Assembly: GCA_048013815.1 (NCBI GenBank)
Contig: CM106586.1
Coordinates: 6,324,001-6,388,000, forward strand
Source of the DNA: Setoptus koraiensis
Taxonomy: Eukaryota; Animalia; Arthropoda
Direction: 5' to 3'
DNA length: 64,000 bases
Shown: piece by piece, positions 43,897 to 53,404 of the stretch
How the letters are laid out: each line of letters starts with the position of its first letter
How positions within the stretch are numbered: the stretch's first letter is position 1
Translations under genes and position numbers: made by a program
Notes under the pieces: model-generated
Database searches by the model: none
Seen by the model: only the letters and a program-made list of their open reading frames with translations
What the model was told of the DNA's origin: nothing

Positions 43897-44291
43897 TGTC
43901 TGGACCACCCCAACGAGATGATGAGGACCACAGATTACAAAGTTGACCAGAGTGTGTGCCCATGGCCAAAGTCACGGGCATAAAATGTGTAGCGTTAGTG
44001 CACTGTTAGTGTATCGTTACTAACGTCGGAGACACTAACAAGGATTAGCGGCGGCACATCTACAGGTGGCGCGCATTGGTCGGCCATTGTTGGTGGTGGC
44101 CCGGCGAATTATTTTCGTCTCTAGAAATATCCACACTAGTTTAGGCATAATAGAGAGAGCCGTTGTTCCTTTGATTCACCTTGTTGTGCGTGTGCGCGTC
44201 GAAGCCGTCGTCGAAGCGTTCGCTGTGTGTGTGTGTTTGTTGTCTGAATGCGATACAATGATTTAGGCGCACACACACACACAATCATTAC

Positions 44292-44498
44292 CAATATAGA
44301 AGATGAAGATGTATGAGAATAATAGGGAGCCGTTCTCAAAATGGGTTCTCCTTCTATCCATTGTGTGCTGGTTCCAGTAATATTATTGTTGGTTGCCACC
44401 ACCATAGACGAATTCCCCCCTCTGGGGCTTGTGCGCGTGTTTATAAGAAGATTGTTATTGTTGTTGTTGTTGTTCTTCTTTGCTGCACACTGTGCCAC
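44292..44498 (-). CDS. Possible first exon of an unidentified gene divergent from ptc
   Basis: ATG-initiated Asn/Ser-rich frame (MAQCAAKKNNNN...SSSSIL) followed by a GTAATG donor. No downstream exon identified. Confidence 0.2.
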
Positions 44499-45496
44499 TA
44501 TGGGCTACACGCACGCACACTTGTGCTGGTGTATAACTTGTACGCTATAAGCCTGACAGTATAAGGCGCGTATAATGTGCGCCTTCTACGGCAATTCCAA
44601 GAAGACAATTTATTTACTCAGATTGGCTTGCACAAAAGCGAACACTATTTGTGATGTCTCTATTAACCTTACCTATCAACCAACCAAAGCGGCATCTCAA
44701 CTGGCGATGGCGCTCGCTGGCCGGCATGATCCGAGCTGAATAATTTGAGCTAGACAGATTTTGGCGTATTTGGTCTGCCACTGACACTGCTCTGTTGTGG
44801 AGCCAGCACTAATGAACAGAGAAGCTCTAGGTGTTCTCTTGTGCTCATGGCTGGGTGCTGGCACTTGCACTGTGTGTTGGTCAGTCGGTCAGCCTGTTCT
44901 GTTCTCACAATGCTCACTATACTCACCATGGTCACCACAGCCCGCTGCACCATTCTGCTCGCCCATGGCTCAACTTGCTCGTCATTCTGTTCGGCTCGGC
45001 GTGTGTACCGAGAGACGTGCACTGGAGCTGTGTACTAATAGAGCGCACAAACCAATGGCGATCGCAGAGGCGGAACACACACCGGCCCATGGAGCAACAG
45101 GCGACCAGGGTGATTGCGCCCGTCAAAATTCGATGCTCAACTAGTGTGTGTGTGTGTGTGTGCGCCGGCCCAGTGCGCGCAGGCCGGCAAACGCCGACGG
45201 GACCATGGTAGCGGCCGCGCTAACATCTCAATCGGTGGCCATCCTCGCGAGTCGCGACTCACGAATTGAGTTGAATGGTCAACACACACACACACATACA
45301 CGCACAGTTGAGGCAACGGCTCAATCATGGCACCACCACTGGTCGCACACACACACACAAATGGCCAAAGTAGCGTGTACACTCATGCGCACGCACTATG
45401 CACGAATGGGCGAAAAGGTTCTCTTGTGCACTAGTGAGTGTGTCCAACAAAACCAACACACCAACGAAGCGACAGCCTGGGTCTCCCCAACGCTAA

Positions 45497-45529
<33 letters not shown>

Positions 45530-46684
45530 GGCTCAAGCGGCATCGTTCTACAGATAATCTAGGTTGTATAGTTGTTGGTTGCAACCAGCGCGCACACACA
45601 TTTCGGGCTGAGGCTAAGGCTCATGCTAGCAGAGTGCTGTTAGTACGCTTGAGCTATAGTCAATATAGAATAGTGGACAGCAACAAAAGTGCATCACCAC
45701 TGCAAACAAATTCCATTCTGATTGCCGTGTGTGTGTGTGATGGTGCGAACAACCAACTATAGATAGCAGTTAAGCAATAGCATCGTACTAGTGCACATGC
45801 AGCTATTCTTTGGCCAGTGTTGCGGCTGCTGATGAAGACGCAACTAGATTCGACAACGACGACGACTCACACATTCGATTTATCTCCGCACAGCGCGACT
45901 AGACACAACAAGACTCACACAGTCGAACTTACACACACACTCACACTCACACACACACACAACAGGACAACAAGCAGCACCCACAGCAGCGAAGAGAGTG
46001 CAAACTAGCTTAAAAGTGGCCAACATCACCCATTGGTCATCAGCATTTCAGCACACAACAACAAGTTCCGAGTGGAGCCAAGTGGCAAGAACTGAAGCAT
46101 CCGAGGACTCAACAGCTCGACAGAGAAATAAACTGAGAGAAATAAAACAAGAATAAAGCAAGACGCCAAGAACAAGAAAATAAGAACAAGAAGTGCACAC
46201 CACGAAGACACAATAGCCGACAATTTTATTATACAAGCTGCAGCAATATGTGATGACGATACACGAATAGAACGTCGACTCAAATGTTTCCCTAGAGGAA
46301 GTCGTATTATCACTCGTACTACCACAATTGTAATTATCAAATCACAATGCGTTACACTAACAGAGAGACGACAAGTATTATATTATTTTTCCATCAAACA
46401 CTCAGTGATCTCTATATGCCCACCATCACCACCACCACAAACAGCCACCATACCAATGTGACACATTACAGCCAACGATGAATTGATGCAAGCATTATCC
46501 CAACATTATCACTATTACATCGACAACGACAGTCACAAACACAAATACAACTCAAACAGATACAATACGAGCCCATTATTAATTTATTGTCACAATTATC
46601 ACATTGCGCACCCACACACGTTACCTCATCCATCGAATAGACTTATGACTGCAGTAGCAACAGTACGAGAGCATTAACAGCAAA

Positions 46685-49600
46685 ATGCCCAATTATATTC
46701 AGCTAATTCTATTTGAGTTAGGCTGCCTCATACACAGAAATGCGGGTAAAATATTGTTTCGTTCCACTCTTATTATGATAACACTTTGTATAGCTTTGAA
46801 ATCGGTTAAAATTGAAACAAATCTAGATAAATTATGGATTGATAACGATGGTAGAGTTGGAAAAGAATTGGCTTACATTGAACAAAAGATAGGCTCCAAT
46901 TCCGGAACATCAAGTCAAGTTGTTATACAAACACCCAAGCAAGGGGAGGACGTTCTCAATGTCAACTCGTTTGTTATACATTTAACAGCTATGCAATTGG
47001 CTACACAAGTGGCCGTTGATATGTTTGGCAGAACATGGAATCTCAAAGACATCTGCTACTCGCCTAGTGTTCCAACATTTGATGGTGGTGGATTCATTGA
47101 TCAAATATTGGAAAAAATCATACCATGTGCCATAAAAACACCATTAGATTGCTTTTGGGAAGGCTCAAAACTATTAGGACCATACAATCCTGTGATGATA
47201 CCCCAACTCGGTTATGTAAAGTGGACAAGCTTAAATCCAAATGCACTTGTTGATACAATGAGACAAGCACAATTACACAACTCATTTGATTATAAGAATT
47301 TATTAGATTGGATGAAAAGATCAGGCGTCCACACGGCCTATCAAAACAAACCATGCCTGGTACCCTCAGATCCTAACTGTCCCATAACGGCACCAAATAA
47401 AAATACTGGCCAATCGCCCGATATTGGAGCAGAATTGACAAATGGTTGCTATGGTTTTGCTCAGCATCAAATGTATTGGCACGAAAGTGAGATTGTTGGT
47501 GGTGTTAAGAAAAACAAAACCGGTTTTATAACAAAAGCCGACGCGCTACAATCCACTATACAGCTTATGGCTGATCAGGAGATGTTTGAATATTGGAAAG
47601 GCAATTACATAGTCACTAATTTAGATTGGTCAGTTGAAAAGGCTAAGCTTGTGCTGGAGGCTTGGCAGAGAAATTTTAGCGAAAAATTAAATGAATTTAC
47701 AATGCAATCACTGGAAACAGAACCATTTGATGTGTACGCCATGACTTCAACATCAATCGATAAATTAATGGATAATTTCTCATCCATAGATTACCCCAAA
47801 CTCATTGGAGGATGTTTAGTGATATTTTTATATACATGCATATTTTGTCCCATCATGTGCCTTTCAAAATCTACAAGTAATGACATCAATGAAACAGTAG
47901 AACAACCAAGATCTTCACCAACAACAAAGAACGACATCAATCAAGATAGCTCGAACACATTCAACAAGTGGACTATCTACGAGAGAATAGCTACTATCGT
48001 TATGGCTTCTTTAGGACTAATCTACATTGGACTAACCCTGGCAGCATCTCTTGGATTTTGTGTACTTTTGGGACTATCATTTAATGCTGCCACCAGCCAG
48101 CTGCTGCCTTTCTTGGCTTTTTGTTTAGGATATCATGATCTTATGATTCTGTTTCAAGTTTTATCAAGAAGTACCCAGCAAGACATACACATAGACTCGT
48201 TGACAGGAGAGTGTTTAAGTGAGATGGGCCCTGGCATCATGATATCATCCATATCGTGTATCGCATCTTTTCTAGCTGCTTACATAATACCTGTGCCGGC
48301 TCTGAGAACACTTTCTCTTCAAGCTATTATATTCCTCATCTTCAATTTGATCTCTATAATGGTTATAATACCATCGATTTTCGACCTGATCTTACGTGCC
48401 AACTCCTCAAATGATACAAAATTGCAGATAAAAATAGACAAAGACAGTCAAATACTGTCCAGAATCAAGCACGATTTGATGAATGTACAGTCCGACTCTA
48501 ACAACATCACTTCTGATCAGCCATGCTTTGATTTTTCAGCTAAAATTAATTCTAATGGTGTGAGTACCACTGTCAAATGGTCTTCAAATAACTCATCAAG
48601 CAATAATGCAAGACGAAGCCATCAAGAATCCAATCATGAAGTTAGATATAACAGAAGAGTAAATATTCCAGAAAGTATAGACAAGCAACGAAATCCCTAT
48701 ACATTAGCATTACCGGATGTTGCACTTCCACAAAGATTCGCTCATAAAACTGATGAAGTAGAAGATGACAATCTCAATCAACCCCGAACAACATCCATTT
48801 CTCCATTAAATCTTAGTGTTTGTGATATTAGAGTTCCATCCGATAATTATAAGTCATCATGCACTGATGGTATGATAAGAGCGTTTGGCAAACTATTGGC
48901 TAGCAATGCCAAGATTCGTTTCCTGTTTATACTATTTGCTGCGACACTGTTCCTATTTATGGCAACAGGGATACCGGATTTAGAAAACAACTTGGAATTC
49001 TCTGACATGGTACCCAAGGATACGTCAGAGTATAAGCATATGACACTAAGGAGAAAATATTTTCCAATTTTCAACGCATTCGCCGTTACCAAAGATAATT
49101 TTGACTATCCTGCATCACAGAGGTTGTTGCATGAGTACTATAATGCTTTGAACAAGATAGATGGTATCGATAAAGATCATCGCGCGGTCTCGCCCAATTT
49201 TTGGTTGGTTCTATTCAGAGATTGGCTTTTAGATTTGCAAAAATCTTTCGATTATGACCGAAACATTTCAGCCATAAGTATTGATGGATGGACATCAGAG
49301 GCCAGTGATAGTTCAATTTTAGCCTATAAACTAATTGTTCAGACCGGTGACATAGCCAACCCTATTGACAAAAATCTGGTAAGTAAAAGATCACTGGACA
49401 GCTCGATTCCTATGCGATTTAATTTTGAATGATTCATACTAATGCTTTTATTTCGGTAATCATTTTATAGTTTAACAAAGCCAGGCTCGTTGACAGCGAT
49501 GGAATAATAAATCCCAAGGCGTTCTATAATTACATGACTGCATGGGTATCAAATGATGCATTCACTTACTCACTATCAGAAGCGAACTTTAGACCTGAGC

Positions 49601-50712
49601 CTGATCAACCTGAACCTTGGATCCATGATCCCAAAGATGTAGAGCTCAAGATACCTAAATCGAAGCCTTTAGTCTACGCCCAGAGTCCATATATCATAAA
49701 GATGCAAAGTACAAGTGATATTTTGAAAACGATTACGGACATACGAAAGATTTGCAACAAATTTGAACAACGTAGATTACCGAACTTTCCAAGTGGAATT
49801 CCATTTGCATTTTGGGAGCAGTTTTTTCAACTCAATTTCCACTTGGTTACTTCACTTTTGGTGACTCTGACTTCAATATTTATGATTGTAATCGTAGTGA
49901 CCTTGAATACCAGAGTCTCGTCTTTGGTCTTACTGGTGTCTCTGATCAATGTTACAGAGTTATACGGCATGATGGGTCTCGCTGCCATCTCTTTCAATGC
50001 GATTCAAGCCGCTGCTTTGACAATAGTCACTGGAATGAGCGTATCGTACTCGATCCACATTGTTACAGTAAGTATGGAGAAAAACTTCTGCGAACTTTTA
50101 ACTCAGTCTTCTTATTTCGATTCATGCTAATTAGACTCATTCCATTTCGTTTTAGACATTTATGATTGCCGAAGGTACAAGGGAACAACGTACAATAGAC
50201 ACCGTATCACGAACTTATGGACCGATTCTACGTAGTTGGATATGCGCGTCGCTCGGTGCATTTGTTATGATGCTCTCGCAATTCGACTATATATTCAAGT
50301 AAGTTATTTTCTGTGATTATGTTCTCAGATACTTACCCTAATATTAAGAACTACAGATTAACTAATATTGATGTATCTCTTCGCTCATATAAATACCCAT
50401 AGGTTCACACTAATTATACAAGGTTCGGTGGTTTTAAACGCAATCAACTCGTTGATTATAATTCCAGTTATATTGGCCTCGTTCGGCCCGAAAACTGTTC
50501 CGAATTGCAGTCATGAGACTGCAAGAGGAGCATCTATTACGGCTGAGATGAGGTACAAATTGAGAAATATGCCAACAAAACACTTTAAACGACGATCGTA
50601 TCCAAGGGTACAGTCGGAAATATCTTTATCAACGATCTCAGAAGAACCTAATCCTCATCAATCCCAGGCCAATGAAACGCATTTAAATACTATTACTATT
50701 AGATGTTATTAG
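46685..50712 (+). CDS. ptc: Patched (Hedgehog receptor, RND/SSD family); exons 46685-49378, 49471-50067, 50156-50298, 50403-50712
   Basis: IIPCAIKTPLDCFWEGSKLLGP, YQNKPCLVPSDPNCP, SFNAATSQLLPFLA, GIINPKAFYNYMTAWVSND, PNFPSGIPFAFWEQ. All three GT-AG introns keep the frame. The start may be incomplete. Confidence 0.95.
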
Positions 50713-52135: not shown

Positions 52136-53404
52136 ATGGAGGTTGGAGCACGATATGTCGTTATGAGAATAGATGGCACGTGGCACGAGGCAGAAATTCT
52201 TGAGATCAGAGACCAGCCACGAAATCCTCCCCATTTAAAAACAGAATATTATGTCCACTATGATGGATTAAATAGGCGCTTAGACGAATGGGTTACAATA
52301 GATAGATTTGATTTAACGAGGCAGCCACGCATAACTAATGGCGAAAGCTCCGGAGAGTGTACACCCACAACAGATTGCGGAGAAAGTAGAAAATTAACTA
52401 GAAACCTTAAAAGAAAACATGACGAAATTAATCATGTGCAAAAATCTTTCGCCGAAATGGACCCACAAACGGCCGCTTTAGAACGTGAACATGAGGCTAT
52501 CACAAAGGTTAAATATGTCGATAAAATACAATTTGGCAAATATGAAATTGATGCCTGGTATTTCTCACCTTATCCAGACGAATATGGTAAACAACCTAAA
52601 TTATGGATATGTGAATATTGTTTAAAATATATGCGTCTAGAAAAATCATACAGACATCACATGGCCATGTGCAGCTGGTCTGGCCCGCCAGGAACAGAGA
52701 TATATCGCAAAGATTCTATTAGCGTCCATGAAGTTGATGGCAGAGACCATAAGATCTATTGTCAAAATTTATGCCTATTAGCTAAACTATTCCTCGATCA
52801 CAAAACACTCTTCTTTGACGTAGAGCCATTCTTATTTTATATATTATGCCAAGTGGACAAACAAGGCTCACATATTGTAGGATATTTTTCGAAAGAAAAA
52901 GAATCATTAGACGGAAACAATCTTGCTTGTATACTAACATTACCCCCTTACCAGCGAAAAGGCTATGGCAAGTTTTTAATAGCTTTCAGTTATGAGCTAT
53001 CTAAAATGGATCAAGTGATTGGATCGCCAGAGAAACCCTTGTCGGATTTGGGAAAACTAAGCTACAGAAGTTATTGGTCTTGGGTTCTGCTGGAGGTTCT
53101 TAAAGAATTCAGTCAGGTGCGCTCATTGCAACAGCTTTCAATCAGAGATCTTAGTAATATGACTTGCATAACGCAGGGCGATATTATATCTACATTGCAA
53201 TCCCTCAGCATTATTAAATATTGGAAAGGTCAACATGCCATCTGTGTGACGCCCAAAGTTATAGAGGAACACCTAAAATGTGCTCAGTTTGAGAGACCTA
53301 AAATCATGGTAGATCACACATTAATTAAATGGACGCCCCATAGGAAGGTCTACAAAAATGGGAATGGCACTGGCAACGGAAATGGTTATGGTAAAAAATG
53401 TTGA
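52136..53404 (+). CDS. mof: MYST histone acetyltransferase KAT8/MOF, intronless, 422 aa
   Basis: Chromobarrel ([16 protein letters not shown]), [15 protein letters not shown]2HC finger, [10 protein letters not shown] and [20 protein letters not shown]. Sequence is KAT8-like rather than Tip60-like. Confidence 0.95.

Follow-up and report, generated by a model that had tools for sequence, protein, structure and literature searches.

A window of 64,000 nucleotides from the mite Setoptus koraiensis (assembly GCA_048013815.1, contig CM106586.1, positions 6,324,001 to 6,388,000 of the forward strand) carries a gene for the Hedgehog receptor Patched (Ptc), in which two of the three acidic residues that form the ion-site triad of vertebrate PTCH1 are replaced. 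We consider it likely, at a probability of roughly 0.72, that this ptc gene is an orthologue encoding a working Hedgehog receptor, that only one carboxylate is left in its ion site, and that this state is old and ordinary for arthropods. The reduced site would be ordinary because a single acid is the commonest state in the panel of Ptc sequences that we aligned, because Hymenoptera share the mite's His-Asp pair in transmembrane helix 4 (TM4), and because Drosophila has Asp-His together with a Cys at the third position. The wider interest is the pattern in eriophyoid mites and in arthropods generally, rather than the mite gene alone.

In the reading frame of the ATG at 46685, the TM4 motif places Cys480 (48122-48124) at human G509, His484 (CAT, 48134-48136) at D513 and Asp485 (48137-48139) at D514. 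In TM10, Gly1086 is kept, Ser1090 (TCG, 50044-50046) occupies the position of human E1095, Tyr1091 that of F1096, and His1094 that of H1099. HMMER alignment to solved human PTCH1 set CLGYHD opposite GVGVDD (in lpflalgvgvdd) and GMSVSY opposite GIGVEF (in gigveftvh), in both cases with no gaps. The canonical GxxxD(D) of TM4 has thus exchanged its Gly for Cys and its first Asp for His while retaining the second Asp, and the canonical GxxxE/D of TM10 has retained its Gly and exchanged its acid for Ser (Ala in a close relative, described below). A first-pass annotation of the window had reported the Cys and His in TM4 and the Ser in TM10 by comparison with human motifs; direct reading and alignment to PTCH1 agree with it on all of these residues, the solved PTCH1 chains match the human motifs that it quoted, and two of the three vertebrate triad positions are indeed non-acidic here.

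The gene comprises four exons on the forward strand (46685-50712) and encodes 1247 residues, and the span 48110-50067 that had been assigned to Patched lies inside it. Pfam matches at residues 437-579 to the Sterol-sensing family (PF12349, 8.3e-16) and to the Patched family (PF02460, 4.7e-11) indicate that a sterol-sensing domain (SSD) is present in TM2-6. All named best matches in a large protein database are 'protein patched', with no Ptr/PTCHD, Dispatched or NPC1 among them, and the closest proteins are that of the relative (86% identity) and then Fragariocoptes setiger Ptc (43%). In HMMER searches of the PDB, the SSD region matched solved PTCH1 chains at E 5e-28 and the region of extracellular domain 2 (ECD2) and TM8-10 at E 2e-46; NPC1-type chains (NPC1, NPC1L1) reached about 1e-5 to 1e-7, some 40 orders of magnitude worse than PTCH1, and exon 3 searched alone gave no match. 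All helices align to canonical Ptc with few gaps in a twelve-helix 1+5/1+5 layout with two large extracellular domains, and the hydrophobic segments of the mite protein fall at the expected places. The same layout was found on end-to-end alignment with human and mouse PTCH1 (6DMY, 6E1H, 6MG8, 7K65), which have D514, G511, G1091, H1099 and P1125 in common with the mite protein and differ from it at G509 (Cys in the mite), D513 (His), E1095 (Ser), H520 (Gln), T551 (Ser) and D1128 (Arg), as well as in a much longer N-terminus and C-tail. The earlier identification of the gene as Patched is borne out by the named matches, by the PTCH1-over-NPC1 scores and by the place of the protein in the Ptc clade; its claim of an intact open reading frame (ORF) is likewise upheld by the four-exon model with canonical splice sites and by an intact orthologue in the relative.

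To set the substitutions against other Patched proteins, we aligned the mite protein and that of its relative with 173 Ptc cluster representatives drawn from two database searches, one of which was seeded with a fly Ptc to bring in Drosophila; the resulting panel is mostly arthropod. Of the sequences outside the eriophyoid clade (see below), 145 could be aligned at every triad position: all three acids are present in 19 of them, two in 25, one in 96 and none in 5. GxxxD(D) therefore does not define arthropod Ptc orthologues, since at least one triad acid is missing in 126/145 of these sequences. The full D-D-E set was found in sampled molluscs, a nemertean, a sea star, decapods and a millipede. 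Lepidoptera have Q-D plus H, termites, orthopterans and several bugs have D-D plus H, mosquitoes have D-H plus G or N, and Halyomorpha has S-Y in TM10, as in the mite. In Hymenoptera (35 representatives, including Vespa, Bombus, Nasonia and ants), H-D is fixed in TM4, identical to the mite's pair (GVHD vs GYHD), and His stands at the Glu position, such that these proteins, like the mite's, lack a TM10 acid and have one acid left; they differ from it in keeping the Gly of GxxxD and in two further residues, with His in place of the mite's Ser at the Glu position and in place of its Arg at the D1128 position.

Brachyceran flies (32 representatives, including all Drosophila sampled) have D-H plus C, reading GVDH in TM4 and GMMLCF in TM10. 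They resemble the mite in having one acid of three and a non-acidic Glu position, but flies keep the first Asp and the Gly; in the mite it is the second Asp that is retained, and the Gly is gone. Drosophila Ptc is the original, genetically proven, textbook repressor of Smoothened. The first-pass annotation had credited it with both the first Asp and the Glu; the Asp is there, but the Glu position is Cys in all sampled Drosophila and brachycerans, including D. simulans, sechellia, mauritiana, yakuba and erecta, five species of the melanogaster subgroup that fall in one 90% cluster. The Drosophila residue D584 is a separate Asp of the SSD and not the GxxxD Asp (PMC3078328). In the searchable literature we found no paper describing triad variation in arthropods, although Petrov 2020 or Myers 2017 may already make the point.

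A close relative of the mite provided a measure of selection. Its ptc comes from a different sample, on a contig of 9.2 kb that shares synteny with the window in that the same KAT8/MOF gene follows ptc, and the exons could be mapped to the same four, with canonical splice sites and an intact ORF of 1254 residues. Identity between the two is 87-92% in exons, 68-74% in introns and 43% in the 5' flank; intron 1, for example, is 68% identical, compared with 87-89% in the adjoining exons. By the Nei-Gojobori method, with dS (synonymous divergence) of about 0.5, the ratio of nonsynonymous to synonymous divergence (dN/dS) is 0.118 for the whole gene, 0.018 for TM2-6 (the SSD), 0.051 for TM7 plus ECD2, 0.171 for TM8-12 and 0.30 for the cytoplasmic loop. 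The gene is strongly constrained, and most so in the half that bears H484 and D485: the relative has exactly the same TM4 motif, flanked by synonymous changes. The pseudo-symmetric transmembrane halves differ greatly in rate between the two relatives, with 0.171 for the stretch 49471-50298 (TM8-TM11) and 0.018 for 48000-48480 (TM2-6). In TM10 the relative reads GMGVAYSIH, with Ala where the mite has Ser; the site once held by Glu is, to judge from this pair, now free to vary.

Purifying selection of this strength, overall and above all in TM2-6, argues against relaxation, and a pseudogene or relaxed selection is ruled out by the relative's intact orthologue together with the dN/dS of 0.12. The first-pass annotation had read the substitutions as a sign of a transport-dead receptor or of relaxed Hedgehog signalling, and had named their being common in arthropod Ptc as a finding that would speak against that reading; common they are, as the arthropod-wide alignment revealed, and with the purifying selection on the gene that reading is not supported. 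Its further suggestion of a mechanistically rewired receptor is possible, but such rewiring would not be peculiar to the mite gene and would fit arthropods generally and eriophyoid mites as a group.

The substitutions are also reproducible across data sets. The stretch 47900-50300 was matched by Logan contigs of four public runs (at least three studies) with zero differing letters or indels, and both codons were covered. Run X1 may be the source of the window and X3 belongs to a separate study; X4 and X5 appear to be duplicate filings of a single data set, whose only coverage of the Ser codon is a contig at a depth of about 5. The assembled contigs from several studies are identical, and this evidence stands at the level of contigs, not of raw reads. 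An assembly error as the origin of the substitutions is rejected in view of these identical contigs. No RNA run was found among the public runs that hold the ptc stretch. Two air-metagenome runs (X13, X14) contain a small share (0.05) of the stretch's words, which would fit either wind-dispersed eriophyoid mites or the conserved part of some related species.

The mite Ptc, that of the relative, that of Fragariocoptes setiger and 25 sequences from run assemblies and metagenomes fall together in a single clade (n=28) inside Acariformes, with a support of 1.0 in FastTree and an SH-aLRT of 100 in IQ-TREE under a site-heterogeneous model; we take this clade to be the Eriophyoidea (gall and rust mites). 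The Gly of GxxxD is absent in 28/28 of its members, its place being taken by Cys, Tyr, Leu or Phe, and the D513 position is non-acidic throughout. Where all three positions could be aligned, 23 of 26 retain no triad acid, with mostly N-Q in TM4 and some K-Q or R-Q. In this respect the proteins concerned (P0008, P0015, P0031, P0032, P0109 and others; loci L002-L005) resemble mouse PTCH1 with the inactivating NNQ mutation. In TM5, at the position of human T551, a minor ligand of the Site-1 cation in PTCH1 simulations (PMC9949057), Glu or Asp is found in 22/28 members of the clade, compared with 0/146 of the other sequences, and in the main eriophyoid clade the buried carboxylate looks to have been relocated to TM5.

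The mite lineage shares the C-tail motif and apparently the intron after TM10 with other eriophyoids, but unlike the main clade it has retained D485, with Ser at the T551 position and Arg in TM11. Cys480 and His484 are common to the mite and Fragariocoptes and are therefore probably ancestral to the eriophyoid clade, which would date the Cys at G509 and the His at D513 to the eriophyoid stem. We entertain, tentatively, the possibility that eriophyoid mites as a group rebuilt, rather than lost, the ion site in the membrane core of Patched, the main clade with N-Q and a TM5 Glu and the mite lineage with a TM4 Asp and a TM11 Arg that may be paired. If true, eriophyoid Ptc would be natural experiments on the number and placement of carboxylates and on the ion used by Patched.

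FastTree placed the mite lineage outside Fragariocoptes plus the main clade, and a KAT8 tree placed Fragariocoptes outside; under the site-heterogeneous model, the three eriophyoid Ptc lineages form an unresolved trichotomy. We rejected the idea that the two eriophyoid Ptc types are old paralogues, since with such a trichotomy there is no supported conflict between the Ptc and KAT8 trees. Synteny was uninformative as a test of orthology, the ptc-KAT8 adjacency being limited to the close relative and not holding in more distant eriophyoids. No canonical ptc paralogue was found among the database matches (the genome itself was not searched): matches in the eriophyoid clade are all of degenerate types, Fragariocoptes has a single Ptc, and no match falls between 86% and 47% identity. 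Hedgehog, patched and smoothened all go unmentioned in the Aculops genome paper.

We propose that D485, the counterpart of human D514, remains as the sole carboxylate of the triad, flanked by His484 and with His1094 kept in TM10. D485 would provide the essential charge, and H484 and H1094 would serve as auxiliary titratable groups. With this site, the mite protein would act, like other arthropod Ptc, as an ion-coupled, sterol-handling protein of the RND type, holding Smoothened in check as long as Hedgehog is not bound. The gene structure, the orthology, the residues with their distribution in other Ptc and the purifying selection are shown; the sufficiency of a single carboxylate and Smoothened as the target are our inference.

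Several observations weigh against this proposal. The triad motifs are called highly conserved and essential in papers on vertebrate PTCH1, and the mammalian D513Y and D513A/D514A mutants and the NNQ triple mutant of mouse PTCH1 are all inactive. Mutations of Gorlin syndrome strike the G and the D of GxxxD, and it is at exactly those two positions that the mite has Cys and His. The Gly is moreover present in 143/146 of the non-eriophyoid Ptc sequences, and the true Ptc homologue of C. elegans, PTC-3, requires its GxxxD Asp (PMC3078328). The normal function of hymenopteran Ptc with H-D and His rests on annotation. Within the mite lineage itself, the second transmembrane half evolves about 9 times faster than the SSD (0.171 vs 0.018), and the Glu equivalent is unlike even between two close relatives.

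The single-carboxylate site has a self-compensated one as its first competitor, in which D485 would be paired with Arg1123 of TM11 such that a tethered positive charge replaces the transported cation; a Ptc of this kind would run without a Na+/K+ gradient, or would use protons via its histidines. Arg1123 stands at the position of human D1128, which in PTCH1 simulations flips towards TM4, nears D513 and hands Na+ to it (PMC9949057). This position is His in 132/146 of the other panel sequences and Arg in only 3. The relative keeps the Arg with an identical CGT codon, so that Arg and D485 occur together in the mite lineage and its relative, and both are missing in Fragariocoptes (T and I) and at two other eriophyoid loci (Q with T or I). 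Tethered charges have precedents in other transporter families. However, this co-occurrence comes from a single lineage (n=1), and the proximity of D485 and R1123 is taken from simulations of the human protein. We regard such self-compensation as unlikely.

A Ptc that is uncoupled or transport-dead also appears improbable to us. Such a protein would no longer run the ion-driven cycle and would have been retained for some other purpose: it might bind or sequester Hedgehog, bind sterols passively or, as in nematodes, work independently of Smoothened. Replacement of both residues of the GxxxD motif would fit this reading, their human equivalents being disease mutations that abolish Smoothened repression, as would the N-Q pair of most other eriophyoid Ptc, which recalls the inactive NNQ mutant, and the weaker constraint on TM8-12. 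C. elegans offers a precedent in an animal without Smoothened: DAF-6/PTR-7, an SSD protein of the RND type like PTC-3 and the mite Ptc, functions without the TM4 GxxxD; PTC-3, by contrast, retains GxxxD(D) and GxxxE, and the mite protein is an orthologue of Ptc, not of Ptr (PMC3078328). An SSD and a TM4 that are almost frozen (dN/dS 0.018) would be unexpected in a passive binder. The same or poorer triads, furthermore, occur across Hymenoptera and in flies, whose Ptc is the textbook Smoothened repressor, and the Glu or Asp in TM5 of most eriophyoids looks like selection for a buried carboxylate.

For an artefact, whether an error of sequencing or assembly, a pseudogene, or a Ptr/PTCHD, Dispatched or NPC1 protein taken for Ptc, we found nothing to speak beyond the contig-level support and the one run with the Ser codon at low depth, and the identical contigs, the relative's intact orthologue with the same TM4 motif and a dN/dS of 0.12, the PTCH1 matches far above those to NPC1 and the position inside the Ptc clade make it highly implausible.

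Coordinates of ptc, its ion-site residues and the neighbouring features are collected below. The mite protein begins only about 20 residues before TM1, and the long N-terminal cytoplasmic segment of other Ptc seems to be truly absent from it; the short N-terminus is supported by the conservation with the relative, which starts at the ATG (5' flank 43% vs exon 87% identical). The position of intron 2 appears to be common to other eriophyoid ptc genes, whose called ORFs stop at that point. The tail motif in exon 4 hardly differs between the mite, other eriophyoids and oribatids; Brevipalpus and a tick retain part of it, and it was not found in the insects and non-arthropods checked. In those other mites and the tick it is followed by P-x-S-Y-H-S (PPSY in the tick, a possible PPxY ligase site), which the mite of the window lacks.

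Downstream of ptc, at a distance of 1.4 kb, lies an intronless gene for a KAT8/MOF histone acetyltransferase with Tudor-knot, zf-MYST and MOZ_SAS domains, whose protein is 99% identical to that of the relative, compared with 88% for Ptc. An ORF of 239 residues with one hydrophobic segment lies tail to tail with it, ending 4 nucleotides from the KAT8 stop, and a gene is called at the matching place on the relative's contig (L001 7247-7876). The region upstream of ptc is rich in simple repeats of the TG/CA and CAA types, and the overlapping ORFs there look like low-complexity products, not genes.

Table 1. Features of the ptc gene and its surroundings in the window (position 1 is the first nucleotide of the window).
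Feature	Position	Strand	Content and basis
Simple-repeat region	44000..46050		upstream of ptc
ptc exon 1	46685..49378	+	residues 1-898: short N-terminus, TM1, extracellular domain 1, SSD (TM2-6), cytoplasmic loop, TM7, part of ECD2; ORF and splice donor, Pfam and best protein matches
TM4 motif LPFLAFCLGYHD	48104..48139	+	read directly; gap-free alignment to human PTCH1 and 173 Ptc sequences
S521 in TM5	48245..48247	+	human T551 position; Glu/Asp in 22/28 eriophyoid-clade Ptc
ptc intron 1	49379..49470	+	92 nucleotides, GT..AG
ptc exon 2	49471..50067	+	residues 899-1097: rest of ECD2 and TM8-TM10; E 2e-46 to PTCH1 chains
TM10 motif GMSVSYSIH	50032..50058	+	direct reading and alignment to PTCH1
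ptc intron 2	50068..50155	+	88 nucleotides, GT..AG, directly after TM10
ptc exon 3	50156..50298	+	TM11; carries R1123
R1123 in TM11	50231..50233	+	CGT codon in exon 3; human D1128 position
ptc intron 3	50299..50402	+	104 nucleotides, phase 2, GT..AG
ptc exon 4	50403..50712	+	TM12 and short C-terminal tail with mite-wide motif YPRVQSEISLSTISEEP; stop 50710-50712
Tail motif YPRVQSEISLSTISEEP	50590..50650	+	in exon 4
KAT8/MOF gene	52136..53404	+	intronless
ORF of 239 residues	53409..54128	-	one hydrophobic segment

Taken across the panel, the D-D-E triad is a minority state among arthropod Patched proteins, though papers on vertebrate PTCH1 call it highly conserved and essential. Its loss in the mite ptc is not to be taken as a sign of a dead receptor or of a decaying pathway. 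Hymenoptera, Lepidoptera, flies, ticks and mites each retain a different single acid or none, and together they provide a natural set of variants for the question of which ion gradient drives Patched and what its minimal site is.

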